This document shows positions 12,775-64,000 of a stretch of 64,000 nt of DNA, piece after piece. The position numbers and the translations under genes are program-made. A model generated the notes under the pieces. The model was given only the letters and a program-made list of their open reading frames with translations, did no database searches and was not told the origin of the DNA. Each line of letters starts with the position of its first letter. Positions within the stretch are counted from its first letter, which is position 1. The stretch covers positions 215,388,001 to 215,452,000 of the forward strand of contig NC_091288.1 of assembly GCF_032444005.1 (NCBI RefSeq), given 5' to 3'. This DNA comes from Ranitomeya imitator. Lineage: Eukaryota.

Positions 12775-18121
<5,347 letters not shown>

Positions 18122-28600: not shown

Positions 28601-31600
28601 TCTGCTGAGCCGTGTATCTAATCCTCTCCTGTGTGATACTGACTGCTGAGCCGTGTATCTAATCCTATCCTGTGTGATATTGACTGCTGAGCCGTGTATC
28701 TAATCCCATCCTGTGTGATACTGACTGCTGAGCCGTGTATCTAATCCTCTCCTATGTGATACTGTCTGCTGAGCCGTGTATCTAATCCTATCCTGTGTGA
28801 TACTGTCTGCTGATCCGTGTATCTAATCCTATCCTGTGTGATACTGTATGCTGAGCCGTGTATCTAATCCTCTCCTGTGTGATACTGACTGCTGAGCCGT
28901 GTATCTAATCCCATCCTGTGTGATACTGTCTGCTGAGCCATGTATCTAATCCTCTCCTGTGTGATACTGACTGCTGAGCCGTGTATCTAATCCTATCCTG
29001 TGTGATACTGTCTGCTGAGCCGTGTATCTAATCCTAGGCGGTGTGATACTGACTGCTGAGCTGTGTATCTAATCCCATCCTGTGTGATACTGTCTGCTGA
29101 GCCGTGTATCTAATCCTATCCTGTGTGATACTGTCTGCTGATCCGTGTATCTAATCCTATCCTGTGTGATACTGTATGCTGAGCCGTGTATCTAATCCTC
29201 TCCTGTGTGATACTGTCTGCTGAGCTGTGTATCTAATCCTCTCCTGTGTGATACTGACTGCTGATCCGTGTATCTAATCCTATCCTGTGTGATACTGTAT
29301 GCTGAGCCGTGTATCTAATCCTCTCCTGTGTGATACTGACTGCTGAGCCGTGTATCTAATCCCATCCTGTGTGATACTGTCTGCTGAGCCATGTATCTAA
29401 TCCTCTCCTGTGTGATACTGACTGCTGAGCCGTGTATCTAATCCTATCCTGTGTGATACTGTCTGCTGAGCCGTGTATCTAATCCTAGGCGGTGTGATAC
29501 TGACTGCTGAGCTGTGTATCTAATCCCATCCTGTGTGATACTGTCTGCTGAGCCGTGTATCTAATCCTATCCTGTGTGATACTGTCTGCTGATCCGTGTA
29601 TCTAATCCTATCCTGTGTGATACTGTATGCTGAGCCGTGTATCTAATCCTCTCCTGTGTGATACTGTCTGCTGAGCTGTGTATCTAATCCTCTCCTGTGT
29701 GATACTGACTGCTGATCCGTGTATCTAATCCTATCCTGTGTGATACTGTCTGCTGATCCGTGTATCTAATCCTATCCTGTGTGATACTGTATGCTGAGCC
29801 GTGTATCTAATCCTCTCCTGTGTGATACTGTCTGCTGAGCTGTGTATCTAATCCTCTCCTGTGTGATACTGACTGCTGATCCGTGTATCTAATCCTCTCC
29901 TGTGTGATACTGACTGCTGAGCCGTGTATCTAATCCTATCCTGTGTGATACTGTCTGCTGAGCCGTGTATCTAATCCTAGGCGGTGTGATACTGACTGCT
30001 GAGCTGTGTATCTAATCCCATCCTGTGTGATACTGTCTGCTGAGCCGTGTATCTAATCCTATCCTGTGTGATACTGTCTGCTGATCCGTGTATCTAATCC
30101 TATCCTGTGTGATACTGTATGCTGAGCCGTGTATCTAATCCCATCCTGTGTGATACTGTCTGCTGAGCCGTGTATCTAATCCTATCCTGTGTGATACTGT
30201 CTGCTGATCCGTGTATCTAATCCTATCCTGTGTGATACTGTATGCTGAGCCGTGTATCTAATCCTCTCCTGTGTGATACTGTCTGCTGAGCTGTGTATCT
30301 AATCCTCTCCTGTGTGATACTGACTGCTGATCCGTGTATCTAATCCTATCCTGTGTGATACTGTATGCTGAGCCGTGTATCTAATCCTCTCCTGTGTGAT
30401 ACTGACTGCTGAGCCGTGTATCTAATCCCATCCTGTGTGATACTGTCTGCTGAGCCATGTATCTAATCCTCTCCTGTGTGATACTGACTGCTGAGCCGTG
30501 TATCTAATCCTATCCTGTGTGATACTGTCTGCTGAGCCGTGTATCTAATCCTAGGCGGTGTGATACTGACTGCTGAGCTGTGTATCTAATCCCATCCTGT
30601 GTGATACTGTCTGCTGAGCCGTGTATCTAATCCTATCCTGTGTGATACTGTCTGCTGATCCGTGTATCTAATCCTATCCTGTGTGATACTGTATGCTGAG
30701 CCGTGTATCTAATCCTCTCCTGTGTGATACTGTCTGCTGAGCTGTGTATCTAATCCTCTCCTGTGTGATACTGACTGCTGATCCGTGTATCTAATCCTAT
30801 CCTGTGTGATACTGTATGCTGAGCCGTGTATCTAATCCTCTCCTGTGTGATACTGACTGCTGAGCCGTGTATCTAATCCTCTCCTGTGTGATACTGACTG
30901 CTGAGCCGTGTATCTAATCCTCTCCTGTGTGATACTGTCTGCTGAGCCGTGTATCTAATCCTCTCCTGTGTGATACTGACTGCTGAGCCGTGTATCTAAT
31001 CCTCTCCTGTGTGATACTGACTGCTGAGCCGTGTATCTAATCCTCTCCTGTGTGATACTGTCTGCTGAGCCGTGTATCTAATCCTCTCCTGTGTGATACT
31101 GACTGCTGAGCCGTGTATCTAATCCTATCCTGTGTGATATTGACTGCTGAGCCGTGTATCTAATCCCATCCTGTGTGATACTGACTGCTGAGCCGTGTAT
31201 CTAATCCTCTCCTATGTGATACTGTCTGCTGAGCCGTGTATCTAATCCTATCCTGTGTGATACTGTCTGCTGATCCGTGTATCTAATCCTATCCTGTGTG
31301 ATACTGTATGCTGAGCCGTGTATCTAATCCTCTCCTGTGTGATACTGACTGCTGAGCCGTGTATCTAATCCCATCCTGTGTGATACTGTCTGCTGAGCCA
31401 TGTATCTAATCCTCTCCTGTGTGATACTGACTGCTGAGCCGTGTATCTAATCCTATCCTGTGTGATACTGTCTGCTGAGCCGTGTATCTAATCCTAGGCG
31501 GTGTGATACTGACTGCTGAGCTGTGTATCTAATCCCATCCTGTGTGATACTGTCTGCTGAGCCGTGTATCTAATCCTATCCTGTGTGATACTGTCTGCTG

Positions 31601-33397
31601 ATCCGTGTATCTAATCCTATCCTGTGTGATACTGTATGCTGAGCCGTGTATCTAATCCTCTCCTGTGTGATACTGTCTGCTGAGCTGTGTATCTAATCCT
31701 CTCCTGTGTGATACTGACTGCTGATCCGTGTATCTAATCCTATCCTGTGTGATACTGTATGCTGAGCCGTGTATCTAATCCTCTCCTGTGTGATACTGAC
31801 TGCTGAGCCGTGTATCTAATCCCATCCTGTGTGATACTGTCTGCTGAGCCATGTATCTAATCCTCTCCTGTGTGATACTGACTGCTGAGCCGTGTATCTA
31901 ATCCTATCCTGTGTGATACTGTCTGCTGAGCCGTGTATCTAATCCTAGGCGGTGTGATACTGACTGCTGAGCTGTGTATCTAATCCCATCCTGTGTGATA
32001 CTGTCTGCTGAGCCGTGTATCTAATCCTATCCTGTGTGATACTGTCTGCTGATCCGTGTATCTAATCCTATCCTGTGTGATACTGTATGCTGAGCCGTGT
32101 ATCTAATCCTCTCCTGTGTGATACTGTCTGCTGAGCTGTGTATCTAATCCTCTCCTGTGTGATACTGACTGCTGATCCGTGTATCTAATCCTATCCTGTG
32201 TGATACTGTCTGCTGATCCGTGTATCTAATCCTATCCTGTGTGATACTGTATGCTGAGCCGTGTATCTAATCCTCTCCTGTGTGATACTGTCTGCTGAGC
32301 TGTGTATCTAATCCTCTCCTGTGTGATACTGACTGCTGATCCGTGTATCTAATCCTCTCCTGTGTGATACTGACTGCTGAGCCGTGTATCTAATCCTATC
32401 CTGTGTGATACTGTCTGCTGAGCCGTGTATCTAATCCTAGGCGGTGTGATACTGACTGCTGAGCTGTGTATCTAATCCCATCCTGTGTGATACTGTCTGC
32501 TGAGCCGTGTATCTAATCCTATCCTGTGTGATACTGTCTGCTGATCCGTGTATCTAATCCTATCCTGTGTGATACTGTATGCTGAGCCGTGTATCTAATC
32601 CCATCCTGTGTGATACTGTCTGCTGAGCCGTGTATCTAATCCTATCCTGTGTGATACTGTCTGCTGATCCGTGTATCTAATCCTATCCTGTGTGATACTG
32701 TATGCTGAGCCGTGTATCTAATCCTCTCCTGTGTGATACTGTCTGCTGAGCTGTGTATCTAATCCTCTCCTGTGTGATACTGACTGCTGAGCTGTGTATC
32801 TAATCCTCTCCTGTGTGATACTGACTGCTGAGCTGTGTATCTAATCCTATCCTGTGTGATACTGTCTGCTGATCCGTGTATCTAATCCTATCCTGTGTGA
32901 TACTGTATGCTGAGCCGTGTATCTAATCCTCTCCTGTGTGATACTGACTGCTGAGCCGTGTATCTAATCCCATCCTGTGTGATACTGTCTGCTGAGCCAT
33001 GTATCTAATCCTCTCCTGTGTGATACTGACTGCTGAGCCGTGTATCTAATCCTATCCTGTGTGATACTGTCTGCTGAGCCGTGTATCTAATCCTAGGCGG
33101 TGTGATACTGACTGCTGAGCTGTGTATCTAATCCCATCCTGTGTGATACTGTCTGCTGAGCCGTGTATCTAATCCTATCCTGTGTGATACTGTCTGCTGA
33201 TCCGTGTATCTAATCCTATCCTGTGTGATACTGTATGCTGAGCCGTGTATCTAATCCTCTCCTGTGTGATACTGTCTGCTGAGCTGTGTATCTAATCCTC
33301 TCCTGTGTGATACTGACTGCTGATCCGTGTATCTAATCCTATCCTGTGTGATACTGTCTGCTGAGCCGTGTATCTAATCCTATCCTGTGTGATACTG
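19638..33397. repeat. 41-bp satellite (gtatctaatcctctcctgtgtgatactgactgctgagccgt)n, ~335 units, with higher-order duplications
   Basis: Read directly; variant landmarks recur at offsets of 4100 and 2460 bp, both multiples of 41. Confidence 0.98.
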
Positions 33398-33454
33398 TTG
33401 TCCTCTCTGGTTACTTGTGATGTTCCTTTGTTTGTGTTAATAAAGCTTTATAGG

Positions 33455-33805: not shown

Positions 33806-36790
33806 AATACTGCCACATAGTGCTGAGACAATAGTACAGAGCCTAAATACTGCCACATGGTGCTGAGACAATAGGACAGAGCCTAAATACTGCCACATGG
33901 TGCTGAGACAATAGGACAGAACCTAAATACTGCCACATGGTGCTGAGACAATAGGACAGAGCCTAAATACTGCCACATAGTGCTGAGACAATAGGACAGA
34001 GCCTAAATACTGCCACAAAGTGCTGAGACAATAGTACAGAGCCTAAATACTGCCACATAGTGCTGGGACAATAGTACAGAGCCTAAATACTGCCACATAG
34101 TGCTGAGACAATAGCACAGAGCCTAAATACTGCCACATAGTGCTGAGACAATAGTACAGAGCCTAAATACTACCACATGATGCTGAGACAATAGTACAGA
34201 GCCTAAATACTGCCACATAGTGCTGAGACAATAGTACAGAGCCTAAATACTGCCACATGATGCTGAGACAATAGCACAGAGCCTAAATACTGCCACATAG
34301 TGCTGAGACAATAGCACAGAGCCTAAATACTGCCACATGGTGCTGAGACAATAGCACAGAGCCTAAATACTGCCACATGGTGCTGAGACAATAGCACAGA
34401 GCCTAAATACTGCCACATGGTGCTGAGACAATAACACAGAGCCTAAATACTGCCACATGGTGCTGAGACAATAGCACAGAGCCTAAATACTTCCACATGA
34501 TGCTGAGACAATAGCACAGAGCCTAAATACTGCCACATGGTGCTGAGACAATAGGACAGAGCCTAAATACTGCCACATGATGCTGAGACAATAGCACAGA
34601 GCCTAAATACTGCCACATGGTGCTGAGACAATAGTACAGAGCCTAAATACTGCCACATGGTGCTGAGACAATAGCACAGAGCCTAAATACTGCCACATGA
34701 TGCTGAGACAATAGCACAGAGCCTAAATACTGCCACATGGTGCTGAGACAATAGCACAGAGCCTAAATACTGCCACATGGTGCTGAGACAATAGCACAGA
34801 GCCTAAATACTGTCACATGGTGCTGAGACAATAGCACAGAGCCTAAATACTTCCACATGATGCTGAGACAATAGCACAGAGCCTAAATACTTCCACATGA
34901 TGCTGAGACAATAGCACAGAGCCTAAATACTGCCACATGGTGCTGAGACAATAGTACAGAGCCTAAATACTGCCACATGGTGCTGAGAAAATAGTACAGA
35001 GCCTAAATACTGCCACATGGTGCTGAGAAAATAGTACAGAGCCTAAATACTGCCACATAGTGCTGAGACAATAGTACAGAGCCTAAATACTGCCACATGA
35101 TGCTGAGACAATAGCACAGAGCCTAAATACTGCCACATGGTGCTGAGACAATAGGACAGAGCCTAAATACTGCCACATGGTGCTGAGACAATAGGACAGA
35201 GCCTAAATACTGCCACATGGTGCTGAGACAATAGGACCGAGCCTAAATACTGCCACATGGTGCTGAGACAATAGTACAGAGCCTAAATACTGCCACATGG
35301 TGCTGAGACAATAGGACAGAGCCTAAATACTGCCACATGATGCTGAGACAATAGTACAGAGCCTAAATACTGCCACATGGTGCTGAGACAATAGCACAGA
35401 GCCTAAATACTTCCACATGATGCTGAGACAATAGCACAGAGCCTAAATACTGCCACATGGTGCTGAGACAATAGCACAGAGCCTAAATACTGCCACATGG
35501 TGCTGAGACAATAGTACAGAGCCTAAATACTGCCACATGGTGCTGAGACAATAGTACAGAGCCTAAATACTGCCACATGGTGCTGAGACAATAGTACAGA
35601 GCCTAAATACTGCCACATGGTGCTGAGACAATAGTACAGAGCCTAAATACTGCCACATGGTGCTGAGACAATAGTACAGAGCCTAAATACTGCCACACGG
35701 TGCTGAGACAATAGGACAGAGCCTATATTCTGCCACACAGTGCTGAGACAATAGCACAGAGCCTAAATACTGCCACATGGTGCTGAGACAATAGCACAGA
35801 GTCTAAATACTGCCACATGGTGCTGAGACAATAGGACAGAGCCTAAATACAGCCACATGGTGCTGAGAGAATAGGACAGAACCTAAATACTGCCATATGG
35901 TGCTGAGACAATAGGACAGAGCCTAAATACTGCCACATGGTGCTGAGAGAATAGGACAGAGCCTAAATACTGCCATATGTTGCTGAGACAGTAGGACAGA
36001 GCCTAAATACTGCCACACGCTGCTGAGACAATAGCTCAGCTTAAATACTGCAACACGGTGCTGAGAGAATAGCACAGAGCTAAAATACTGCCGCACGGTG
36101 CTGAGACAATAGTACAGAGCCTAAATACTGCCACATGGTGCTGAGACAATAGTACAGAGCTTAAATGCTGCCACATGGTGCTGAGACAATAGGGCAGAGC
36201 TTAAATACTGCCATACAGTGCTTAGACAATAGTACAGAGCCTAAATATTGCCACATGGTGCTGAGACAATATTACGGAGCCTAAATACTGCCACATGCTG
36301 CTGAGACAATAGGACAGAGCCTAAATACTGCCACATAGTGTTGAGGCAATAGGTCAGAGCGTAAATGCTGCTACATTGTGCCGACAAGATAGTACAGAAC
36401 CTAAATACTGCCACATGGTGCTGAGACAGTAGTACAGAGCCTAAATACTGCCACATGCTGCTTAGACAATAGGACAGAGCCTAAATACTATCAAATGGTG
36501 CTGAGACAATAGGGCAGAGCCTAAATACTGCTACATGGTGCTGAGACGATAGTACAGAGCCTAAATATTGCCACATGGTGCTGAGACAATAGGACAGAGC
36601 CTAAATACTGCCACATTGTACTGAGACAATAGCTTAGGGCCTACATACTGCCACATGGCAATAGTACAGAGCCGAAATACTTCCACATAGTACAGAGCCT
36701 AAATTCTGCCCCATAGCACTGAGATAATAGTACAGAACCTAAATACTGACCTGTAGTGTTCAGATAATAGTACAGAGCCTATCCACTATT
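33806..36790. repeat. 40-bp minisatellite (gcctaaatactgccacatggtgctgagacaatagtacaga)n, decaying to ~37080
   Basis: 40-bp period read directly; ~73 units. Confidence 0.96.
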
Positions 36791-37864: not shown

Positions 37865-38638
37865 ATGTCCTCCGCACAGGAAGAGAGTGGGACGTACGGA
37901 GCCGCGTCCGGAGAGGAGGACCAGCAGCCCCTGAGGTGAGAGGGGGATCTGAGCACGGTATATGGCGCTGACATGTGCCCCCCATGGTCAGCACTCCGAT
38001 ATGGCGCAGATGTAGAGCACTGGTTCCGTCTGGGATTGTGGCGACCTGACACCCGCCACCTGGACGTGCCCCGGCTCACGTATTACGGGCAGCCTTTATA
38101 CGAGGCGTCGTTAACGTCCAAGATCCCGGCGGCGGCTCATGTCCACGTGACCCGTATACGTCAATCACACAACGCTCGCTCTCGTCTTGTTACAATGTGT
38201 CAGTGCAGCCAGAAGCGTATCAGTCCGGAGGGCGAGGTATAGTAATAGGGAGGTCTCAGCCCCTCCGATCAGGACGGGAAGCAGGAAAAATAGGGAAAAT
38301 AATGAGGAATCGAAACATAAAAAGAGATTAGAAAGTCTGAGAATTAAAAGAAATATATATATTTATATATACATATTTATTTTTATATATTTATTATTTA
38401 TATATTTACTATTTATATATATTATTCCTATTTACATATATNNNNNNNNNNNNNNNNNNNNNNNNNNNNNNNNNNNNNNNNNNNNNNNNNNNNNNNNNNN
38501 NNNNNNNNNNNNNNNNNNNNNNNNNNNNNNNNNNNNNNNNNNNNNNNNNNNNNNNNNNNNNNNNNNNNNNNNNNNNNNNNNNNNNNNNNNNNNNNNNNNN
38601 NNNNNNNNNNNNNATATATGTGTAAATATTATGTATGA

Positions 38639-38688
<50 letters not shown>

Positions 38689-41600
38689 TCATACATAATA
38701 TTTACACATATATTTACTATTTATTTGTAGTTACGGTATTTATTTTCATATATATAATTTTTCACTTCTTTTCTCTATCCGTTTAGTTTTATGCCTTTTT
38801 TTTTATTTTATAGAATTATTATTTGTTTTCCATTTTGAGTCTTATTAGATGTAAAGTGCGAAAGGTGAATATTTGTGTTGTTTTATACAGTGAAGGAAAT
38901 AAGTATTCGACCCCTCGCTGATTTTGTACGTTTGCCCACTGACAATGACATGAACAGTCTGTAATATCAAGGGTCGGTTAATTTTAACCTTGAGAGGTAG
39001 AATATCCAAAAATACAATCCGGAAAATCACATTGTATAAATGTATAAACTTACTAAATCAGCTAGGGATCGAATACTTATTTCCACCACTGTATTTCTTT
39101 TTACCTTTTGTACTTGTTGTTTTACACTCATAACAGACCCCCGGGGGGAATCCACACTTAGTTTCCAGGTTTGGGGCATCTAGAGGGAATATTAGTCTCT
39201 GGTGGGGCATGTGGGGGTCCTGACTTTGGTCACTGGGACCAGTAGGAGCTGTGATATTGACTCCTCTGGTTCTAAGCCTCCTCTGTCTTCCCCATTGGGC
39301 CTCAGCTTTGTCTTTTAGCCGAAAACCCAACCCGATAGATTTCAGGCGCTTTACATTTAATTTTTTTTTATCGTTTTTTTTTTTTTTCCAATTACATCCA
39401 GAGCAATTTTCAAAATTCTGCCCACGTCCTATGGGAAAAGACTGCAGTTTAGCTCCACATCTACCAGTCTTGTGACATCTCTGCCTTGCTCTCCATTCAC
39501 AGGAAACTGGCAGAATTCCGAATTCAGCTCTGAATGTGAACAGGAAAAAAAACCCGATAAAAAGCTGCAAAGTAAACGATTTACAGTTCCACAATCTCAG
39601 ATAGAATTTAGCTGACTCCATATTTTTTTCTCAAGATGGAGAAATTTCTTGCAGATTTTCGCCGCTTCCCTTTTTTTGCAGAGATTTCCTGTAAAAGAGA
39701 GCCATCGTCCTCTTGGTAATATCCGATGCCGGCCATCTTGTCTGACCGGGTCGCCCTCTTGTCTTCTCTAGGCCGACAGATCTGTCCGAGCTTCTCAAGG
39801 AAGGAACCAAAGTGTCTCACGAGAAGGCGGAAAACACGAAGTTCGTGAAGGATTTCCTTAAGGGTCGGATCAAGCGAGAATTATTTAAGGTGGGTGAAGG
39901 CTGAGTGTAAAACACGGACTGGTCGAGTCACCCAACGCCAGAACAATTCGCCTGGTGCCGTCCCCTCCTGCCAGTATCTTCTCCAGTCGTTTGTAAGAAA
40001 GCTGGGGGGCTCCAGTATCCAATATGGCCGCCGTCACCCAGCGCTAATAAAACATAAACCTTTATTCTAAAATCTACAAATGACCGAATTGACATAACAC
40101 ATGGTGCACTCGTGTATTTCCATTCCTAGAGTGACACAGAGAATTTGACAGAGAGACATTTTATTTGTATGACTACAATAGATCACATTGCGGAGACTTC
40201 TGGGATTTCGTTTCGTGTCAATTCTCGTTCGCCGTAGGAATTGAAATAAATGAGTGCACAATGTGGTATGTCAATTAGGTTATTTTAATATTTTAGAATA
40301 AAAGTTACTTTTTATTATCCCTTTCAGTGACTCTTAATATTTCAGGGCTAAATAAACCTATCATTGATATTGTCACCCAGCTTTGCCTGACTCCTGACCA
40401 GCAATTCTGACAAAATGGAATTATTTATAGCCGGGGTGATATCCCGTTACATACGGCTTCTTGTAGTTTCCGGGATTAGTGCAGATCCCCTGAGCGGTGA
40501 CATGACTAGGGACCTGTGTATCAGGTTGCAGGCTGCTCTACATCCTCCGCAGTCAGTAACAGAGTGGAGAGACCAGCTCCGCTGTATAATAATATATGTA
40601 TATGTGATGAATGTCTGCGGGATCACTCACCTATATATAGGGATAACGAACCAGTCACAGAGCAGATCCAGTTTCTGTCGCTCCCTGTTCCGTCGCTCCC
40701 TGTTCCGTCGCTCCCTGTTCCGTCGCTCCCTGTTCCGTCGCTCCCTGTTCCGTCGCTCCCTGTTCCGTCGCTCCCTGTTCCGTCGCTCCCTGTTCCGTCG
40801 CTCCCTGTTCCGTCGCTCCCTGTTCCGTCCCTCCCTGTTCCGTCCCTCCCTGTTCCGTCCCTCCCTGTTCCGTCCCTCCCTGTTCCGTCCCTCCCTGTTC
40901 CGTCCCTCCCTGTTCCGTCACTCCCTGTTCCGTCACTCCCTGTCCCGTCCCGTCCCTCCCTGTCCCGTCCCTCCCTGTCCCGTCCCGTCCCTCCCTGTCC
41001 CGTCCCTCCCTGTCCCGTCCCGTCCCTCCCTGTCCCGTCCCTCCCTGTCCCGTCCCGTCCCTCCCTGTCCCGTCCCGTCCCTCCCTGTCCCGTCCCGTCC
41101 CTCCCTGTTACTTCCCTCCATTTTCCGTCCCTCCCTGTTCCGTTTCTCCCTGTCCCGTCCCTCGCTTTTCTGTCCCTCGCTTTTCTGTCCCGTCCCTCCC
41201 TGTTCCGTCCCTCCCTGTTCCGTCCCTCCCTGTTCCGTCCCTCCCTGTTCCGTCCCTCCATTTTCCGTCCCTCCCTGTTCCGTCCCTCCCTGTCGCGTCC
41301 CTCGCTTTTCTGTCCCTCCCTGTTCCGTCCCTCCCTGTCCTGTTCCGTCCCTCCCTCTTCCGTCCCTCCCTCTTCCGTCCCTCCCTGTCCCGTCCCTCCC
41401 TGTTCCGTCCCTCCCTGTCCCGTCCCTCCCTTTTCCGTCCCTCCCTTTTCCGTCCCTCCCTTTTCCGTCCCTCCCTTTTCCGTCCCTCCCTTTTCCGTCC
41501 CTCCCTTTTCCGTCCCTCCCTGTTCCGTCCCTCCCTGTTCCGTCCCTCCCTTTTCCATCCTAGTTTTTGTGTAAAAACGCCAATATAAATGTGATATCGC

Positions 41601-44600: not shown

Positions 44601-47600
44601 GGCGGCTGAGGTGGAAGTGTCAATGGGGATATTGAAGTCACCCATGATGATCGTGGGGATGTCGGCTGAGAGAAAATGAAGTAGCTAGATGGTGAAGTGG
44701 TCAATAAAAGGTGGAGATGGCTAGTTCTGGGGGGGCGGTACATGACAGCCAGCTGGAGATTGGAGGGGGAGTAGATGCAGATGGAGTGCACCTTGAATGA
44801 GGGAAGAGTAGCAGAGGGTGGTAGTGGAATTGGGGTAAAGGAGCAGGTATCGTACAGGAGCAAGCCAACCCCTCCACCATGTTTGTTGCTGGGGCGAGGG
44901 GTGTGAGAGAGGTGGAATCCACCATAGGAAAGAGCGGCTGGAGAGGCTGAGTCAGAGGCGGTGAGCCAGGTTTCAGTGATGCCGAGGAAGGAGAGTTTGT
45001 TATTGATAAAGAGGTCTTGGATAAATGACAGTTTATTGCAGACAAGAGCGTGCGTTCCATAGTGCTCCAGGTAGGGAAATTGGGGGAGTGGGGGCTGGAT
45101 GAATGGGTATGAGGTTACTGTGGTTGCGAGGACGTGTAGAGGATCGTGGCAGGGGATTAGAAATGAGTGTGGGGATGTGATGAGGAGGGCCAGGATTTGG
45201 GGATATGTCGCCAGCAATGAGGAGCAGCAGACAGAGCGTTAGAAGGTGTGAGCAGGATAGGTCATGATGTGGCCGTGTGTGTCTGGAGAGAAAGGATTGT
45301 GTGTGGAGGAATAGTTCTGTGGAGGAGGTGAGGTGACTGGGGAGGATGGAGGAAGAAATGACTAGTTCCTTACTGGGTGGAGGGATTACAGGAGATAGGA
45401 AGAAATAAAGTAGTATGGGGGTGAATGTTACAGGAAACCGAAACATTATTGAAGTTTTCTATTCCTTTACCTTCCAGTTAATTCCAGTCCAATTCATGGT
45501 AATTAAAAATCTATAATTTAAAAGATGGAATTTCAAAGATGGTCAGACACGTCTGGTCAGACTCATGGCTTTGAATTTATGTGCACCTAAGGGCTCACAG
45601 CTGAGAGGGGGGATGTGGGCCTGTGTGTGTCCAGAGCACATGTTCACAGTTAAGAAGGTAATAAAGAGGGGGTGGGGTAGATGGCCACTCAGGTATGCCA
45701 GGAAGACACAAGAGGAGTGAAATACATATGGATAGAAAATAATGGGTAAGCAAAGCATGCCAGGTGGCAATTACATGCACTTCACATAGACAGACATAGC
45801 AGGAAAAGCTGAGTAGATGAGCAGCATACCAGGTGGCAATTATATGCACTTCATATAGAAAGACATAGCAGGAAAAGCTGAGTAGATGAGCAGCATACCA
45901 GGTGGCAATTATATGCACTTCATATAGAAAGACATAGCAGGAAAAGCTGAGTAGATGAGCAGCATACCTGTGGGTAGACAAAACAACTCGATTAGATGAT
46001 GCAGTTGGTGATGAGGATGATGAAAGTACAGCTGTGATGAATGGGTAAATGCTTCATGGAATTCTAGTCTAATTCATGGTAATTAAAAATCTAATTTAAA
46101 AGATGGAATTTCAAAGATGGTCAGACACGTCTGGTCAGACTCATGGCTTTGAATTTAAGATGGAGGCAGATGGAGGCACTATGGATGCCTTCTGACCTAT
46201 GATCTAGCGGTGTTCGTTTTTTTTAGGTGTATTAGTAACACATGGATCGACAGCCTATAAAATGTTCACACCCCCTTGTCTGCATCCTGTATACAGCTCG
46301 CCACGGGTGCTCTGTACTACACGTATTCTGCGCTGGAAGAGGAGCTTGACCGAAACAAGGAGAACCCGGCCATCGCACCCCTGTATTTCCCTCAGGAGCT
46401 GCACAGGGCGGAGGCGCTACAGAAAGATGTCACCTACTTCTATGGTGAAGATTGGAAGGACACGATCCAGTGCTCTGAGGCCACACAGGCTTACGTAGAC
46501 CGGATCCGCCACTTAGGCCGTCACAAGCCAGAACTGCTGGTGGCTCACGCCTACACCAGGTACATGGGGGATCTGTCAGGAGGTCAAGTCCTGAAGAAGG
46601 TGGCACAGAGAGCCCTGCACCTGCCCAACACCGGGGAAGGGATCCAGTTCTACATGTTTGATAATGTCACGAATGCCCAGCAGTTCAAGCAACTCTACAG
46701 GGCCCGACTCAACACACTGGAACTGAATGCCAAGGCGAAGGAGGACATGGTGGAAGAAGCAAACAAAGCCTTCCAGTTTAATATGCAGGTATGTGTCTAA
46801 CAGTGCCTGGAATTATGAGAACTATAATGCCGCCCTTATGTACAAGAATGTAACTACTATAATACTGCTCTTATGTACAAGAATATAACTACTATAATAC
46901 TGCCCCCTATGTACAAAAATATAACTACTATATTACTGCCCCTATGTACAAGAATAACACTACTATAATACTGCTCCTATGTTCAAGAATATAACTACTA
47001 TATTACTGCTCCTATGTACAAGAATATATCTACTATAATACTGCCCCCTATGTACAAGAATATAACTACTATAATACTGCGTCATGTACAAGAATATAAC
47101 TACTATAATACTGGCCCTATGTACAAGAATATAACTACTATAATACTGCTCCTATGTGCAAGAATATAACTACTATAATATGCTCCTATGTACAAGAATA
47201 TAACTCCTATAATACTGTCCCCTATGTACAAGAATATAACTACTATCATACTGCTCCTGTGTACAAGAATATAACTACTATAATACTGCTGCTATGTACA
47301 AGAATATAACTACTATAATACTGCTCCTATGTACAAGAATATAACTACTATAATACTGCTCCTATGTACAAGAATATAACTACTATAATACTGCTCCTAT
47401 GTACAAGAATATAACTACTATAATACTGCTCCTATGTACAAGAATATAACTACTATAATACTGCCCCTATGTACAAGAATATAACTACTATAATACTGCC
47501 CCTATGTACAAGAATATAACTACTATAATACTGCTCCTATGTACAAGAATATAACTACTATAATACTGCTCCTATGTACAAGAATATAACTACTATAATA

Positions 47601-48551
47601 CTGCTCCTATGTACAAGAATATAACTAATATAATACTGCTCCTATGTACAAGAATATAACTACTATAATACTGCCCCTATGTACAAGAATATAACTACTA
47701 TAATACTGCTCCTATGTACAAGAATATAACTAATATAATACTGCTCCTATGTACAAGAATATAACTACTATAATACTGTCCCCAATGTACAATAATATAA
47801 CTACTATAATACTGCTCCTATGTACAAGAATATAACTACTATAATACTGCTGCTATGTACAAGAATATAACTCCTATAATACTGTCCCCAATGTACAATA
47901 ATATAACTACTATAATACTGCTCCTATGTACAAGAATATAACTACTATAATACTGCCCCTATGTGCAAGAATATAACTACTATAATACTGCTCCTATGTA
48001 CAAGAATATAACTACTATAATACTGCCCCTATGTACAAGAATATAACTCCTATAATACTGTCCCCAATGTACAATAATATAACTACTATAATACTGCCCC
48101 TATGTACAAGAATATTACTGCTATAATACTGACCTTATGTACAGGAATATAACTATAATACTGCCCCCTATATTGAAGTGATTGTGGTAATTTTGTACTT
48201 TTTCATTTTCTGAAGGTATTTGAGGAGTTGGATAAGATAGGAACCACCATCCCTGATGAAGCACAAGATGGCGGACTTCCAGTGCATGATGGGAAGGGAG
48301 ATATTCGCAAATGCCCGTATTATGCTGCAAAAGGTGCGTGTAGGTGTCACACATTACATATGTACACATACGTAAATACGCACAGTATAGTGATGTGCAG
48401 GGGTCTCATCTCCTCCTCTCTCGCAGATGCTGCCTCCTCAGGATGTCCACTCCACGCTGCTCTGGCTCTAACAGGTCGCCCGGAAGTTAAAGCAGCACTA
48501 GCCGCTTTCGCCGCCGCCATCGCTGCCACCATCGCTTGGTATCTTATGTGA
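37865..48551 (+). CDS. HMOX2: Heme oxygenase 2, copy 1, 307 aa; coding exons 37865-37935, 39772-39889, 46297-46788, 48216-48333, 48427-48551 (exon acceptor at 37823, 41-nt UTR)
   Basis: In-frame GT-AG exons of 71/118/492/118/125 nt: MSSAQEES...[29 protein letters not shown]...[21 protein letters not shown]...RKCPYY...GCPLH...AWYLM. Two C-terminal Cys-Pro heme regulatory motifs and a membrane anchor identify HO-2 rather than HO-1. The third mammalian CP (VQCP) is IQCS here. Adjacency to NMRAL1 matches mammalian gene order. Confidence 0.96.
38442..38613. other. Assembly gap (172 N) in AT-rich low-complexity sequence
   Basis: N run flanked by TA-rich tracts. Confidence 0.99.
38888..39091. mobile_element. 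204-bp non-autonomous Tc1/mariner element
   Basis: TA|cagtgaaggaaataagtattcga ... tcgaatacttatttccaccactg|TA: terminal inverted repeats with TA target duplication. Confidence 0.85.
40675..41555. repeat. Pyrimidine-rich minisatellite (gctccctgttccgtc, 15 bp) grading into shorter variants
   Basis: Read directly; source of the SLFRR/PVPSL/GTEQG periodic ORFs. Confidence 0.93.
42048..46170 (-). mobile_element. Near full-length, frameshifted L2-clade LINE in HMOX2 intron
   Basis: (TAA)n tail at ~42048; RT fragments ([34 protein letters not shown]) in 42767..43876; APE endonuclease (GITETWL, MGDFN) in 44346..45217; N-terminal [13 protein letters not shown]. 5' boundary is approximate. Confidence 0.9.
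46822..48172. repeat. 35-bp minisatellite (ctatgtacaagaatataactactataatactgctc)n filling an HMOX2 intron; reverse complement of 13352-16256
   Basis: Same unit as the NMRAL1-B array on the opposite strand. Confidence 0.96.
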
Positions 48552-48715: not shown

Positions 48716-51113
48716 GAACTGCCGGGAAGGGGGTTTCTCGGCCTAGGGAGTATTAACCCCTTAATGTTCAGATTCAGGGGTTATATGCACTATAACTGTG
48801 TTCTAATAGGTCGGTGAGCACAGCCATAAGCACACAATAGGTCTTACCCTAGAAGTCGCCATTGGCTGCTCATCTACCACTTACTGTATATTACGAGATG
48901 TGTTGAGAGGATTTAGCCATATGTATATGCAAGACTCCCAAAGATGATTTCATGATTTATTACGGATGAAGTATTAATGGTTTGGTGCTGCCACGTGAGG
49001 AAACCATCTTGTTTTTGGAGCTGTAGTTCCTCGTAGATTTTTAGATATACTGTGACGCCAATATGGCCGGCCATCGACACAGCCCGGAATTTCGTGCCTC
49101 TTTGAGAATCCATTCACTTCTAACAGTTTACTCATCAGATTTTACATATCGATCATTGAAGATCATCCATCCAATATGGCCGCCGTGACACCTTTCCTGA
49201 GGGCTACAATGGGATTTTGCCTAGTGATGCATCTCCTGTTTGCCTTTTTTACAGTCTGACCACCACTGTTGCTGCCATATTGTTTTTGAACCAGATTTTC
49301 CAGAAATGGATTTCTAAGAAATTGCTAAGAATTTGGATTTTTAGGGGGATAACGCTGTGTAAATATCACCAGTAACAGAGACTAGGTGTAGGCGGCCATA
49401 TTGGTGACCTTAGATTACAACTAGAGAGGCGCAAATAACATTGTGCCTCATACCTCATTACTCCATCAACGGTTTGGCTAGAAAATGGCCGCCTTTTGCT
49501 GTCCTTAATTCTTACAAGGTAACGGTTGTGTGAGTGTGCGGAGCTCGGATGTCTGAGCCGTTCCTCGCTTGGAGATAACAAAAGGAGCTTTTTGTGTAAC
49601 TCAATAAATTATATTAAAATATCGAATGTGTAAGTTGTTCCTACTTCGGATGCTTTTATCGTGGACAAGCGGCGCCCGTATCAATCAATATTTTCCTCAA
49701 TGACTCCTCGAGACACTTTCTCTTCCATTGACCTCAGTCGTATGAGAGTGTCTGGTTGCTATTCACTCTGTTTGTCCACAACAACCGGTCTGTCAGACAT
49801 GATTAAGTTGTTTAACTCTGTCATCCCTTGTCATCCGGCATTATTATTAATCAGACGTTTTCCCAAAATTTGACTCCCCTGCCTCAGGAAGAGGGCATCA
49901 CCTCCAACAGCCCCCTCTATTTACTGTATTCACGTCATCAGTCATGTTTTATGTTCTCTGTCAGACTATATCACCACCCACAGGCAGACAGAGGCTTCGA
50001 CAAAACATGGGGCACTGCACTCCGACCATGTTTGTCAGAACTGTTTTATAATCCATGGCAACCAATCAGCTTCTTATTCCACCACAGAGCAACCAATCAG
50101 AGCTCAGCTTTCGTTTTACCTCAGCAGTGTAAGATTTGACTGAGGTGGTCATCTACTCTGTCAGTCAGTGTTTCTCTGTGGCAGGCGGTAGGAATGTGTA
50201 TGTCTCCATCATGGCGAGTTGTGATAGTCAAGACCGATGTACCCGACACATTGTAATTGGCCACCGGATACGGAGGTAGACGGCCATGTAGAGTCGTCAC
50301 AATAGATCATGGCGGATGAATAATGATAATCTTTATTTTTATATAGCGCTAACATATTCCGCAGTGCTTTACAGTTTGAACACATGATCATAGATGAAGT
50401 GCGATTCTATGGAACTGGGTGTGTTGCCTCACAGAAAACTCGCATGAAAAAAAATCTCCCCTTTATGACCCCAAAATCTGTGTTTTGATGCTCGGATCAT
50501 GGGTTTTATATTCTGTGGTGAGAATGTGAACACATCCATGTAGGGGAACTTCTTCCTAAAATTTCTTGCACAGGGTCCTGTTTGTAGCCCACCCTGGCTT
50601 TACTTCCAATTGGAGACCACTTTAGTAAATCATTCTCCCCACAGCCAGGTCTCCGTATAATGATCTTTGGTTGCCAATAGAAATGGCTTTCTGTCCTACT
50701 TCTCCGGAAAGGATCAGAGCCTCTGTAGTAGATGACAGTGTAAGTGAAAGGAAGATTATATTGTCATATGTGCATGAGCTGCCAGAGGGGGGAGGAGACT
50801 TATCTTCTCAAAAGCACAGAATGGCTTCATGTGGAAGCAAAAAATGCTTAAAAATGTATCTTGATACTAGAAAAAAAGATGACTCAAGGACTTAAATTTA
50901 CCGAGGGCTAAAACAAAGTTTTGTGGCTCATGTCGTGATATTTTTTACTTTGGCCATAACAAACCACAATGAGTGAAGTTTTTTGGCTCTATTTAAGTAA
51001 TGGGAACTAAATATAAACCCACGGAATAAAATCCACCTTGATCACGGCTTGTGAGGAGCAGTGTAGTGGAAACTAATCCATAGGCTGGCTGGAACGTTGG
51101 ACATCTTGTTAAG

Positions 51114-57929: not shown

Positions 57930-59395
57930 CTTTTGGCCTTAACAACGCCCCTGCAATTTTTCAGCATTTCATTAATGATGTGTTTTGAGATTTCTTGGAC
58001 CAATTTGTTGTTGCTTACCTCAATTACATTCTTATGTTTTCAGACACCTTGGAGGAATATGGCAGGCATGTCCAGTCCTTGGAACGTCTACAGGAAAATC
58101 ATCTCTATATTGAACTCGAAAAATGTGAATTTGAACAAGCCATGATTCAATTTCTTCGATATATCATCTGCCCAAAAGGTCGTCTGAGTATGGATCCTAG
58201 CAAAATCAGAGCCGTGGGTGACTGGTCTACTCCAAGAAATGTAAAAGACGTCCAACGCTTCTTAGGCTTTGCAAACTTCTACAGAATATTCATAAAACAT
58301 TTTCGAAGATCATCTTACCAGTCACTTCAGTCACAAAGAAAGCTTTTTCTGATCTCCAGAGGCACAAGTGGCTTTGACAAACTAAATCCTCGTTTTATTT
58401 CTTCTCCATTACTAGTCCATCCAAACCCTGAACTGCCGTTTGTTATCGTAGTAGACGCCTCAGACTCCGCGGTGGGAGCAGTTTTGTCTCAACGAGTTGG
58501 AGACAAGATGCAGCTTCATCCATGTGCATTCCTTTCTCATAACATGTCATCTGCAGAAAAGAACTATGACATTGGAAGATTGTACAAGACTATAAAGAAG
58601 CAGCAGATAAACATCGCAGAACCTTTCAGGCTGATTTTAACTTGCGTACCATCTTCTAAACTGGGTCAAAAATTCATAGGACCTTTTCACAGCCTGAAAA
58701 TTCATCATGCATCCTTGCTCAAACCATAGAGTGAGACTCATTTAACAGGAAGAACTCAGCCACCTTCTCCACCACAGCAAAAGGTCCAAGGTGAAGGAGA
58801 ACATCCTGTTGACAAAATTCTGGACTCTAGAAGATTTAGAGGCAGATTACAATAGTTGGTGCAATGGAGGGGTTACGGACCAGAACGTAGCTCTTGGGAG
58901 CCCCTAGGTTTGCGAGAGCATTTTATTAGAGGCATCCAGAGAAACCTTCCCCTGAGGTGTCCTGAGGCCATCCTGGAAGGAGGACACTACTGTCGAGACT
59001 CAGTGCATCAGGGAGCAGCTCTTCCTTCTGAGCTTCTCAGCTCTATGGACAGCTCCTTGCTTTTTTAGCCACCAGTACCTGTTGTTTCTGTTTGGCTCCA
59101 CCTTGTGTTTTTCTGATTGGCTCCACTCTGATTCCAAATCGAACACCCTATTTACGACTGATCTTGCACAACTTTGTGAAATTATTGAGTTTCCAGCCTT
59201 TAGTGGAGCGCTCTCACCTGTTGCTCCTCCATATCATACTGCTGCTCCTGTTTTCTGACCTCCGACTACGCTACCTACCTATGCTACGACTAGTGGTTGC
59301 CATACTAAGTCTCCAATCCAAACCCGGGTTTTTAAACAACCGTAAGTGTCAAAGGGCAACTTAGTCACACAGTAGATGGCAGTTACAGGGTGACA
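57930..59395 (+). mobile_element. Internally deleted Ty3/gypsy (chromovirus-type) remnant with PPT and 3' LTR (58991 to ~59387-59395)
   Basis: RT end (degenerate YLNY for YLDD, EKCEF, RFLGFANFY), RNase H (VDASDSAVGAVLSQ, EKNYD), integrase GPF tail (QKFIGPF), chromodomain (VDKILDSR...LVQWRGYGPE..SWEP), PPT GGAAGGAGGA 58975-58984, then TGT. Confidence 0.88.
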
Positions 59396-59542: not shown

Positions 59543-62500
59543 ATGTCCTCCGCACAGGAAGAAAGTGGGATTTATGGAGAGAAGGACCACCAGCACCCGA
59601 GGTGAGAGAGTGATCTGCGCACGTTATGTGGCGGTGACACATTCTGCAGCGATGTACAGGATTATGTCTTAGTAGCGAGCTGTATCCCCCATGTCATCTT
59701 AGATTGCCAGCTCTTCTATCCTGTATTGCAGTATGTGGGAGATATAGAAGGGAGAGCTGGTTCTATAATTCTATGCCACACTCAGGTTATACAGGCAGGG
59801 TTGAAGCTCGGATTATGTAACCGTCCACCTGTACGCGTCCCGGCACACCTTGGGTTATTAAAGTCACTACCTTAAAGATTCTGGCCTTCGCTTTTGTTTG
59901 TGCTGGTTTTATTCATGACACCTTATTTTTATAGTTTGTTTTTTTTCTTAATTTGACACTTATTAGGCAAAGTACTAAAGGTAACTCTTTGCGTACGTTT
60001 AAGTTGATGTATATTTCTTGTACATTTTGTCTGTGCTTTTAACATTATATGTCCCCCTACCCTCTCTATGGCATCATAGCAGACCTCTGGAGGAAATCCA
60101 CACTTACTCTACTGTTTTCGACTATAATGGGGGCATCCAGAAAAACCCTGTCCCGTGTGGTGACATTAATCCCTCGTGGTGCTTTTCTGGGTCTTGCCTT
60201 TGATCACCAGGACCAGTAGGAGCTGTGATATTGCCGTAGCTCATTGACCCATATGTAGAAGATGGAAACAGTTATAAACCTCTTCTGTCTTCTCCATGAA
60301 ACCTCTATTTTTTTCTTTTAGCCAAAACCCAACCTGATAGAGTGCAGGGGCTTTAAACTCGCTCTGCACTTTTGCAGCATGTGGTCCTAAACGTGATGAG
60401 TCTACACAGTGTGGAAGGACTTTATAGTTTTCGAAAGTTTTTCTCCAGTTACTTCCAGAGCATTTTTTGTTATAAACTCTGCATTTCTCACATAAACATA
60501 CTTCCTTTTAGCTCCATTTTCTACCAGTCTCATGACTTCTTTCTGAGCTCTCACAATGCACTACTCTCTTTTGAAAGAGAACATGGAAAAATTCTGAATT
60601 AAGCTCTAAACATGAGTGAGAAAGAAAACTTAATGAATTTGGCAAGTAAACTATTAACACTTAAGTCTCATTCGGACGTTCGTGTCAATCAGTCTGGGTA
60701 TGGAATGCTAAAGCACGGATTGGTCATGGCTCTCCCAACCCAAGTGTGACAGCTTCATTTACTATAATTTCACAAAAAAATTTCCTTTAGACCTAATTTA
60801 TTTTTACTTTCGCAAGGGAAAGAGGAGAAAATGGACCATGCAATTTGTTGTGAAATTTCTCCTGAGCATGCTGATACCCCATATGTGGGGGAAAACTATT
60901 GTCTGGGCGCATGGCAAGGCTTGGAAAGGAAGGAGCGCCATTTCACTTTTTGAATGTAACATTTGCTGGCATAATAAGCGGATGCAATGTCATGTTTGGA
61001 GAGCCCCTGATGTGCCTAAATAGTGGAAACTCCCAACAAGTGACGCCATTTTGGAAACTAGACCCTTTAGGGAACTTATCTAGATGTGTATTGAGCACCT
61101 TGAACTCCCAGGTTCTTCATAGAAGTTTATAGTGTAGATCCGCTTTGCATTGTCCTGATGGAAGCGCACAGGGAAATCTTTCCCTGGGCGATGCTCTTCT
61201 ATGTTGCTGTCACTACTGACAGCGGCATCAGAGGGGTTAAATGCCCACGATCGGTGCTGCCACCGATCGTGGGCATTGCTGCAATGTCAGCTCTCACATA
61301 GAGATACTGTAGTCAGTGAAGACAGATTGTTGCATTACTGATATAGGAGATGGCGATTGGTGCTAATAACATTCTATGATGGGAGGAGCTTTACTTCTAG
61401 CTCCTCCCCTCCTACATATATAGAGCTTTATGAGCACCAATTGTCATCTTCTATGTCAGTAATATAATAATCTGTCTTCACTAATTACAGATTTTACCTG
61501 TAAATTGAGAATTAATGATCAATCCTGGAGGAGAAAGAAGCAGATTTCTCTGATAAGATATTACAAAGTTTCTTATTTTCATGTGAACTATTCAATCATG
61601 AAATAAAAATTAAAACAACATCGAACCAGAAAGAAAACATAGCATAACTCACAATCCGATTCAGTGTTACTCAATTTCTTGCAGATTTTAACCGCTTCCC
61701 TTCTGTCATGATCCAGACTGGGTTTGGAGTCCTGCTTACCCCTTTCCCGGTCTGGTCATGTCAGGGGTTAACTTTGTTCTGCCTCATTCTGGGTTCGGGT
61801 TTGCTATTTATCTCCGCTGCATCCTGCAGGCGGTGTCGGTTATAGTTTCTGCCTACAGCATGAATAGCTGACCCTGCTTAAACCCTGATTTGCCCTGCTG
61901 CCTTTGCTGACTGTGCCCGTTTCTGTTTACTCCCCTCTTCCCGTCCCGACACAGTGTTTCCCTTTCATGTGTGGACTCCCAGGTACTTGATTCGGCTTGG
62001 ACCCTGACTTGCTTTTGTCTCTTGTCTTTGGTATTTCCACTCCTGACCGGTATTGACCTTTTTGGCTTGTCTCTGACTCTGTGTTTGTTTATTCCTTTGG
62101 TACTGCGCTACTGACTAATATCGACCCGGCTTGTTTGACTATCCTGCTGCCACCTGGTGGTAGTCTCGCTGCTGTGCTGCAGGTCTGCTCTGGCAGTGTG
62201 CAGTCCTCCCACCACTATATTGCCATCTAGTGGAGCTTGCATCTCCCTGCATAGCACCTTCTTTGCTGAGATTTCCTTTAATCCCTTCATGACCTATGAC
62301 ATATAAGTGCATCATAGATCGTGTATTCCCCTTTGATGCGGGCTCCGGCGCTGAGCCCGCATCTTTTTCTGAATATGACAGCTGATCTGATCAGGCTGTC
62401 ATGTGTCTCTAACAGCTGCGGGTGGAATCCTGATCCTCCTGTTAACATGTTAAATGCCGTTGTAAATCTTGGACAGCGGCATTTAACATAATAGCGATGA

Positions 62501-63705
62501 AAGCGCATCACAAACCTCGCCCAACGGCACCCCTGTCATATGATTGCGGGGTGCCGATGGGTTGGCATGACAACTGGGGTTATGCAGAAGACCCCCGTGT
62601 TTGTCACTGCAGATGTGCTAGGATTGTAGGCCGCTGATGATTTCGGCTGTGATAGAAATGATGATTTCTGCTCGTGCTACATTTCTGCTATGTGCAGCAC
62701 AAGCGAGTGGAAGATCACAGCTTCAGGTCTCCTCAAGAGACTATTGAAGCAAGTAAAAAGTAGAAAAAAAAGTTTTTAAAAATATTTAAAAAAAATAAAT
62801 AAATGTTCAAATCACCGCCCTTTTGCCCCATTCAAAAGAAAACAATAAAAAAAATACCCATATTTGGTATCGCCGCATTCAAAATCGCCCGATCTATCAA
62901 AATATAAAGTAAATTAATCTGATCGACAAATGGCGCAACGAGAAAAAAAATTAAAACCACAGAATGACAGATTGCAATAAAATGGAATAACAAGCGATCA
63001 AAACATCATGTCTACTCCATGATGGTATCAATAAAAACGACATCGTGGCGCGCAAAAAATAAGCCCTCAATCAGCCCCAGATCCCGAAAAATGGAGACGC
63101 TACGAGTCTCCGAAAATGGCACCATTTATTTATTTATTTTTTACAATTTTTCTTTTTTCAACACTTATCATGTCTGATATCTGTGAACTGGGATACTGGC
63201 CTGGACAATCATAATGGCAGCTCAGTTTTAGCATTTTGCGATCATGGTAAAAAAAAAAAAAACAATTGTGAAATGGCATTTTTTTTTTTTTTTTTGCAAT
63301 TTCACTGCACTTGGTATTTTTTCCCGATTTCCAGTACACTGTACGGTAAAACCAATGCTGTTGTTCAAAAGTTCAACTTGTTCCGCAAAAAACAAGCCCT
63401 CACACGGCCATATTGACGGAAAAATTAAAAAAAAGTTATGGGTCTGGAAAGAAGGGGAGCAGAAACCGAAAATACAAAAATGGAAAATCCCAAGGTCGTG
63501 AAAGGGTTAAATGAGAACCATCATCCTCTTAGTAATGTACGATGCCGGCCATCTTGTCTGACCGGGTCGTCCTCTTGTCTTCTCTAGGCCGACAGATCTG
63601 TCCGAGCTTCTCAAGGAAGGAACTAAGAAATCTCACGACGACGCACAAAATACCAAGTTCATGAAGGATTTTCTTAAGGGTCGGATCAAACGAGAATTAT
63701 TTAAG
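59543..63705 (+). CDS. HMOX2: Heme oxygenase 2-like, copy 2 (partial); coding exons 59543-59601 and 63588-63705, continues beyond the window
   Basis: [20 protein letters not shown]|[39 protein letters not shown]; intact splice sites (acceptors 59503 and 63587), in-frame 12-nt deletion vs copy 1. Later exons are not visible, so pseudogene status cannot be excluded. Confidence 0.82.
61704..62256. mobile_element. Solo LTR, 553 bp
   Basis: TG...CA with perfect 5-bp TSD CCTTC (61699-61703, 62257-62261); absent from the homologous site in copy 1 (~39668). Confidence 0.85.
62282..63506. mobile_element. piggyBac-type non-autonomous element, ~1225 bp
   Basis: TTAA|tcccttcatgacc ... ggtcgtgaaaggg|TTAA; homology with HMOX2 copy 1 resumes on both sides. 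Confidence 0.8.
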
Positions 63706-63843
63706 GTGGGTGAAGGCTGAGTGTTAAAGACGGGCTGGTCGAGTCACCCAGTGCGAGAACAATTCGCCTGGTTGTCGGCCATTTTGGATCCAGCATTATA
63801 AATGGCCCACCCAGGTGTATCCATATAAATGGCCCACCCTGTA

Positions 63844-64000
63844 TCTATAATATAACGCTGGGAGCGTCACTCTGTCCGAAGCCTTTATAGACTGCGCAGG
63901 CGCAAGCGCCGGCGCAGTCTGGCCCCCACAGAGTGACGCTCCCAGGAGATCGCGGTATGCGTAAGCACTGAACGCATACCGCGATCTCCACCGGAGAGTC
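63844..64000. mobile_element. Start of a hairpin-rich interspersed element, possibly a non-autonomous Helitron
   Basis: A|TCTATAATATA start; stems gggagcgtcactctgt/acagagtgacgctccc and ggagatcgcggtatgcgt/acgcataccgcgatctcc; cut by the window end. Confidence 0.4.

Follow-up and report, generated by a model that had tools for sequence, protein, structure and literature searches.

Heme oxygenase 2 (HO-2) is usually a single, slowly evolving gene, and current models of what it does give a central place to the regulatory tail and the membrane anchor. For tandem paralogues, theory describes islands of divergence that are held against gene conversion (PMC3924837), and examples are the GOT1 paralogues of Tigriopus (PMC3728101) and the RH2 opsins of medaka (PMC7337190). 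Here we describe two tandem HO-2 genes (HMOX2), both on the + strand, in a window of 64,000 nucleotides (nt) from Ranitomeya imitator (contig NC_091288.1, positions 215,388,001 to 215,452,000), the window being the whole stretch of DNA that was analysed. The upstream gene is called copy 1 and the downstream gene copy 2. We lean towards gene conversion with conversion-resistant sites as the best reading of this pair. As in the systems above, the duplicates are near-identical in most of their coding sequence, carry short differences that are fixed across species, and follow the species at other sites. Unlike in those cases, the evidence for HMOX2 is mostly at the protein level, with one exon compared at the nucleotide level; and whereas the retained sites of the opsins are tuning sites, those of HMOX2 are known from sequence. 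Full-text searches found no paper on the copy 2 gene or pairing heme oxygenase with Ranitomeya, and the two papers that mention both heme oxygenase and poison frogs do so only briefly. Copy 2 is thus a previously undescribed gene and a clean example of an already-known evolutionary pattern, not a new principle.

The main observation concerns exon 2, for which the following features were compared.

63508-63772, + strand: alignable block of copy 2 (265 nt, ungapped, 28 differences, 89.4% identity to copy 1)
39692-39956, + strand: counterpart block of copy 1, from the self-comparison of the window
63588-63705, + strand: copy 2 exon 2, with AG at 63586-87 and GT at 63706-07; it encodes the proximal heme helix with the His ligand
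39772-39889, + strand: copy 1 exon 2, bounded by AG and GT
63624-63661, + strand: divergent patch of copy 2 exon 2 (38 nt), with 13 of the 15 exon differences

In the ungapped alignment, exon 2 of copy 2 differs from that of copy 1 at 15 bases, and 13 of these lie at 63624-63661. A preliminary description of this DNA had counted 13 of 15 differences within 42 nt (63622-63663), and our recount agrees with it while narrowing the interval; translation exactly reproduced the two patch peptides that it gave. Random placement of the differences puts 13 or more into a single 42-nt window at p=0.002 when the block is used and at p=0.0005 when exon 2 is used. Five codons, with 8 of the changed nucleotides, carry replacements (V14K, E17D, K18D, E20Q, and V25M in exon 2 numbering). 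The other 5 of the 13 differences are in codons with synonymous changes only (T12, K13, A19, N21, and T22), and therefore the patch is not purely an amino-acid phenomenon. Outside the patch, exon 2 has just two differences, both synonymous. The 81 nt before the 42-nt interval (63541-63621; 47 intronic and 34 exonic) were described as differing at one base, which we found at 63570. The outer parts of the block are 12-19% diverged and the homology ends abruptly at both sides. It was also correctly noted that exon 1 and the other introns are far more diverged: identity between the copies is 75% in the exon 1 region and 68% in intron 1, as well as 77% in the promoter.

To polarise the changes, exon 2 DNA from the genomic locus of Eleutherodactylus coqui (L001) and from one hyloid cDNA (L002) was used as outgroup. 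These two orthologues differ from each other at 5, 4, and 3 positions in the 5' flank, the patch, and the 3' flank, respectively (about 10% across the exon). Because they differ evenly along exon 2, the patch is not intrinsically fast, and the idea of a fast or hypermutable part of the exon was rejected. Copy 1 has acquired 5-6 changes in the patch, four synonymous plus a Glu to Val, while copy 2 has acquired 7, six in replacement codons and one synonymous. The divergence between the copies in the patch (13) exceeds the distance of either copy to E. coqui (9 and 9). Seven unaltered copy 2 patch codons are identical to the hyloid HMOX2 cDNA, third positions included; therefore the patch is HMOX2 sequence altered in place, and import from HMOX1 was rejected on the same ground.

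The differences were then counted segment by segment, between the two copies and between copy 1 and E. coqui.

Upstream distal intron, 32 nt: 6 between copies, 23 to E. coqui
Upstream proximal intron, 63540-63587, + strand (3' end of copy 2 intron 1), 48 nt: 1 between copies, 18 to E. coqui
Exon 5' flank, 36 nt: 0 between copies, 3 to E. coqui
Patch, 38 nt: 13 between copies, 9 to E. coqui
Exon 3' flank, 44 nt: 2 between copies, 3 to E. coqui
Downstream proximal intron, 63706-63724, + strand (5' end of copy 2 intron 2), 19 nt: 0 between copies, 3 to E. coqui
Downstream distal intron, 48 nt: 6 between copies, 24 to E. coqui

With the distal-intron ratio (0.26) as the yardstick for the differences expected between paralogues, the patch has an excess at P about 1e-6. 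The proximal introns together differ at 1 of 67 positions between the copies versus 21 of 67 to E. coqui, a deficit against the 5.4 differences expected (P=0.03). Several points weigh against reading these numbers as conversion around a spared patch. In the exon flanks, the 2 differences seen are in line with the 1.5 that would arise if there were no conversion. Patch and flanks contrast in synonymous changes only at p=0.07, and the proximal intron is partly constrained, since a 13-nt core carrying a branch-point-like CTGAC (63558-63562) is conserved to E. coqui. No Rfam match near threshold was found for a structured RNA behind the conservation of the intron, and that candidate was rejected. 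The striking feature of exon 2 is the patch excess, and the evidence for homogenised flanks within this exon is real but modest.

These same points are what an explanation without any conversion in exon 2 would draw on. The exon would simply be slow, as the small difference between the two hyloid orthologues also indicates, and the splice-proximal intron would be constrained. The patch would be a local burst of replacements in copy 2, either adaptive or relaxed after the loss of the anchor and regulatory motifs described below, joined by chance synonymous changes in copy 1. The six copy 2 changes in replacement codons, against 1-2 synonymous ones, fit this, and so does the copy 2 patch of Phyllobates terribilis, which has five further replacements (5 of 14 residues versus 14 of 208 elsewhere in the protein, p=0.003). 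On the other hand, the 1 of 67 in the proximal introns contrasts with their divergence from E. coqui, and the 4-5 synonymous changes of copy 1 sit in the same 38 nt. A further objection comes from exon 3, for which the proteins of other species were needed.

Proteins annotated as 'heme oxygenase 2-like' that correspond to copy 2 were found in four genome annotations by protein searches and cluster look-ups, with lengths in amino acids (aa) as follows.

P0181, R. imitator: copy 2 protein, 253 aa
P0002, R. variabilis: copy 2 protein, 255 aa
P0182, Dendrobates tinctorius: copy 2 protein, 257 aa
P0005, P. terribilis: copy 2 protein, 253 aa

P0181 (XP_069590922.1) starts with the copy 2 exon 1 and exon 2 peptides of the window, the latter (39 residues after a split R) being identical to its residues 21-59, and it continues through intact exons 3-4. 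Copy 2 from exon 3 onward is beyond the window end, and the database protein was used for these exons. Because P0181 runs on through exons 3-4, the downstream exons exist in the R. imitator genome; the check on them suggested in the preliminary description thus finds them present and intact in the annotated protein of 253 aa. The patch is shared among species: R. variabilis and D. tinctorius have the same peptide without change, P. terribilis has the Asp, Gln, and Met in common, so that four species carry the patch or these three residues.

An alignment of 15 protein sequences (positions 25-246) was used to compare the copies. At eleven residues (38, 41, 42, 44, 49, 186, 191, 192, 219, 228, and 239) every copy 2 protein is distinct from every copy 1 protein, and five of these lie within 12 residues (38-49; permutation p=0.006). 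In copy 2, Asp41, Gln44, and Met49 do not vary among the four species, against changes at 7-8% in the remainder of the protein. Within R. imitator, the proteins differ in exons 2-3 only at nine sites, all of which distinguish the copies in every compared species; in exon 3 there are just four (N186D, Q191H, Q192K, and N219K).

The other variable sites follow the species. Asn174 is found in both copies of both Ranitomeya species and nowhere else in the alignment, and Lys209 in both copies of R. imitator only. The private differences between copy 1 of R. imitator and copy 1 of R. variabilis (134 and 209) both match R. imitator copy 2. Leu138 is present in copy 2 of D. tinctorius and P. terribilis, while the Ranitomeya copy 2 has the Arg of copy 1. 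Lys212/Gly213, the state of Anomaloglossus, is found among copy 2 proteins only in D. tinctorius, while copy 2 of Ranitomeya and Phyllobates has the Glu-Asp of copy 1. In the accepted tree, Phyllobates falls outside Dendrobates plus Ranitomeya. Without conversion, the states at sites 174, 209, 212/213, and 138 imply about nine changes in parallel or in reverse, each of them toward the other copy of the same species. This speaks against the explanation without conversion, which we consider unlikely. The tract scale would be very short, with 209-213 converted between retained 192 and 219. Two points limit the exon 3 argument: its evidence for conversion is at the protein level, the nucleotide comparison covering one exon, and the distinguishing sites come from the very alignment in which they were then compared, which makes some contrasts partly circular. 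The earlier claim that conversion homogenises the flanks of the patch thus holds up in part. The species-tracking sites (134 among them) and the proximal introns support it; the exon flanks are as expected without conversion.

If conversion did take place, the patch might have been spared for mechanical reasons, with 13 mismatches in 38 nt blocking heteroduplex formation or triggering its rejection, and the residues would then have no special function. Mismatch density is known to inhibit homologous exchange, and a review of the theory is available (PMC3924837). Preservation is also best in the two places where distinguishing sites are most crowded (38-49 and 186-192). However, the isolated distinguishing sites 219 and 228 persist a few codons from the converted 209-213 in two lineages, Ranitomeya and Phyllobates, and selection fits this better than a mismatch barrier. 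The single-residue site 239 persists in the same way. The barrier also sits poorly with the invariance of Asp41, Gln44, and Met49, and it leaves the origin of the cluster unexplained. We regard it as rather improbable. The idea that copy 2 is a pseudogene in decay or an artefact of assembly, or that its patch was imported from HMOX1 or another paralogue, is largely excluded: the protein evolves about twice as fast as copy 1, its C-terminus is truncated, and Met54 (human HO-2 numbering) and three exon 3-4 changes coincide with what we take to be human HO-1 states, but the frame is open with the same ending in four species, patch-specific words occur in sequencing runs from seven studies, the unaltered patch codons match hyloid HMOX2, and the residue of HO-1 at the key site is Glu and not the Gln of copy 2.

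Under gene conversion with conversion-resistant sites, the neighbouring copies would exchange short stretches, and this exchange would keep the greater part of exons 2-3, together with some tens of bases of the adjoining intron, near-identical within each species. Eleven distinguishing residues, five of them on the proximal heme helix, would never have been overwritten in the four species. Because these sites would not be overwritten, the patch would keep the full divergence accumulated since the duplication, synonymous in copy 1 and replacement in copy 2. Selection, and not a mismatch barrier, would spare the sites, and the sites would presumably change function.

What the patch does to the heme pocket was judged from the residues concerned. 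In human HO-2 numbering, the proximal helix of copy 2 has K43, D47, Q49, and M54 in place of E/V, K/R, E, and V. As previously stated, the ligand His is unchanged, and Gln replaces Glu four positions further on; human HO-2 structures place these residues at His45 and Glu49. All four copy 2 proteins have Gln at this site. The Glu (Glu29 in HO-1, Glu49 in HO-2) hydrogen-bonds the δ-nitrogen of the imidazole (PMC7948506). In soybean HO-1, Gln34, four residues after His30, is listed among the heme-binding residues; in this plant enzyme the imidazole ring is rotated, and the His makes its hydrogen bond to a carbonyl of the backbone (PMC7948506).

The preliminary description had proposed that selection preserves a functionally distinct heme pocket, and this claim is weakened by the distribution of the same residues elsewhere. 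Gln occupies the Glu49 site in the ordinary HO-2 of Mixophyes fleayi, Rhinatrema, and Microcaecilia (among P0021, P0022, and P0098), human HO-2 likewise has Asp at 46, and Met54 is presumably the HO-1 state, going by an earlier comparison with HO-1. Positions 43, 46, and 47 are variable among frogs. Furthermore, four tinamou HO-2 proteins (P0016, P0061, P0070, and P0072) have Thr at the Glu49 site. Loss of Glu49 is recurrent among these proteins though the residue is usually treated as conserved, and it is not strictly family-defining. In Mixophyes, the caecilians, and the tinamous, the Gln or Thr is found in an ordinary full-length HO-2, whereas in the poison frogs it is found in a truncated extra copy. 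Since Gln49, Asp46, and Met54 recur in ordinary HO-2, human HO-2, and HO-1, the change of the pocket is probably subtle. At the same time, the five further replacements in the P. terribilis patch indicate that the proximal helix of copy 2 has been subject to change repeatedly.

Copy 2 is a real, intact gene that is predicted to encode a complete catalytic core. P0181 matches PF01126 with 272.8 bits (cut-off 23; E=2e-81) over profile positions 2-204 of 204, and the exon 2 peptide alone matches it with 36 bits (E=8e-9). His36 of P0181 aligns with human HO-2 His45, and the distal segment YMGDLSGGQ is identical to that of human HO-2. The Lys, Arg, and Tyr that bind the heme propionates, whose roles have been described (PMC7509768), are conserved in copy 2. 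Its top matches are all HO-2, and it has about 91% identity to the frog's own HMOX2. In R. variabilis the genes have the same tandem order, with a 307-aa gene ending about 2 kb upstream of the 255-aa gene. Copy 2 appears to be poison-frog-specific, being present in four dendrobatines (two Ranitomeya, Dendrobates, and Phyllobates).

Compared with vertebrate HO-2 (human structures 2QPP, 2RGZ, and 5UC8), copy 2 aligns over the whole catalytic core and has the same exon structure, but the R. imitator protein ends with EGKGDIHKHP. Both C-terminal Cys-Pro heme-regulatory motifs, RKCPYY and SGCPLH in copy 1, are absent from all four copy 2 proteins, which stop before them at HKHP, HKYL, or RKYL. The hydrophobic C-terminal membrane anchor is absent too (253-257 aa versus 307 aa in copy 1). 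The copy 2 proteins also carry a deletion of four residues (LPVH), and all of them end near EGKGDI(H/R)K. In this they resemble anchor-less HO-1 and HO-2, either cleaved or truncated in the laboratory, which are soluble catalytic cores without the hydrophobic tail; the crystallised forms are truncated. However, the truncation of copy 2 is encoded in the gene and fixed in the lineage, whereas that of the others results from proteolysis or engineering. Loss of the anchor is reported to alter trafficking and the coupling to cytochrome P450 reductase (PMC3335857).

The clear functional departure of copy 2 is the predicted loss of the Cys-Pro regulatory motifs and the anchor. The shift is likely towards a soluble enzyme or heme binder without thiol/heme regulation and with a slightly retuned proximal side. 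A bolder proposal, which we find quite doubtful, is that copy 2 would be a neofunctionalised poison-frog-specific soluble heme protein. Its His-carboxylate hydrogen bond would be weakened by Gln49, the outer face of its proximal helix would be reversed in charge, and the thiol/heme regulatory tail would be missing; its distinguishing residues would be actively defended against conversion because they change heme affinity, redox behaviour, or partner choice. If this were true, copy 2 could, for example, buffer or sense heme in the cytosol, or supply biliverdin and carbon monoxide in particular tissues. In any case, copy 2 is a natural lineage-specific HO-2 copy that lacks the tail and the anchor and has fixed changes around the iron ligand though it is otherwise probably overwritten by its neighbour. 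It offers a ready-made mutational experiment, with about eleven residues marked by evolution, and for molecular evolution a compact, testable case of conversion against selection.

The words of 63540-63760 were found in 20 sequencing runs from the seven studies mentioned above, and ten small assemblies contained them at a share of 0.46, the modal value. The wholly exonic fraction of the 31-mers in this interval is 0.461, of which copy 1 could supply at most 0.14. Since the observed share equals the exon-only share, spliced copy 2 RNA is suggested, and thus copy 2 is probably transcribed into spliced RNA in at least three coded organisms. A protein search with residues 1-110 of P0181 found no transcript-derived short fragments of copy 2.

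The remaining exons of the two genes in the window are as follows.

37865-37935, + strand: coding part of copy 1 exon 1, about 75% identity to the copy 2 exon 1 region
46297-46788, + strand: copy 1 exon 3, catalytic core
Within 48216-48548, + strand: last exons of copy 1
59543-59601, + strand: coding part of the ancestral exon 1 of copy 2 (19 residues plus 2 nt), matching the N-terminus of P0181

P0001 (R. imitator HMOX2, 307 aa) is a 100% match to the translations of all copy 1 exons. Exon 1 of copy 1 served as the gauge of unconverted divergence. Compared with it, exon 1 of copy 2 has an in-frame deletion of 12 nt, and its GT donor at 59602 is intact. Upstream of the alignable block, copy 1 39643-39672 matches copy 2 61673-61702. 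Because this is the next upstream match, about 1.8 kb that is found in copy 2 only (61703-63507) is taken to be inserted. Past the block (63773-64000) there are duplicated aaatggcccaccc motifs and long inverted repeats (e.g. 63940-63995), resembling a transposon insertion.

Positions 50211-50276 of the window have 81% identity to the first exon (MASCDSQDQCTRHIVIGHRTRR) of the copy 2 model from R. variabilis; they lie about 1.7 kb past the last exon of copy 1 and 13 kb upstream of copy 2 exon 2. Since the R. variabilis model uses this type of exon and the R. imitator model uses the exon at 59543, the gene may have a choice of promoters and first exons. The E. coqui HMOX2 contig (L001) contains two exon-1-like segments about 760 nt apart (4133-4207 and 4896-4970), with 96% and 88% identity to the protein N-terminus. 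Directly upstream of copy 2 exon 1 there is an open frame of 246 aa (57989-58726) that by its appearance is a candidate fragment of a retroelement pol gene.

Intron 1 of copy 1 contains a run of 172 N (38442-38613) flanked by AT-rich simple repeats. Intron 2 of copy 1 contains a 15-nt tandem repeat (TTCCGTCCCTCCCTG, 57 copies, 40673-41560) that gives rise to long but spurious open frames with a high content of Pro, Ser, and Leu. A 35-nt satellite lies in the copy 1 intron between exons 3 and 4 (46821-48155); it is the reverse complement, at about 92% identity, of one of the arrays upstream of the genes (13352-16257). These arrays, which make tandem repeat about half of the first 37 kb of the window, are listed below.

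1028-5427: 29-nt unit
8443-10907: 20-nt unit
13352-16257: 35-nt unit
17183-18046: 61/124-nt unit
18388-19553: 22-nt unit
19638-33398: 13.8-kb satellite array, 41-nt unit, 336 copies, 93% matches
33806-36658: 40-nt unit

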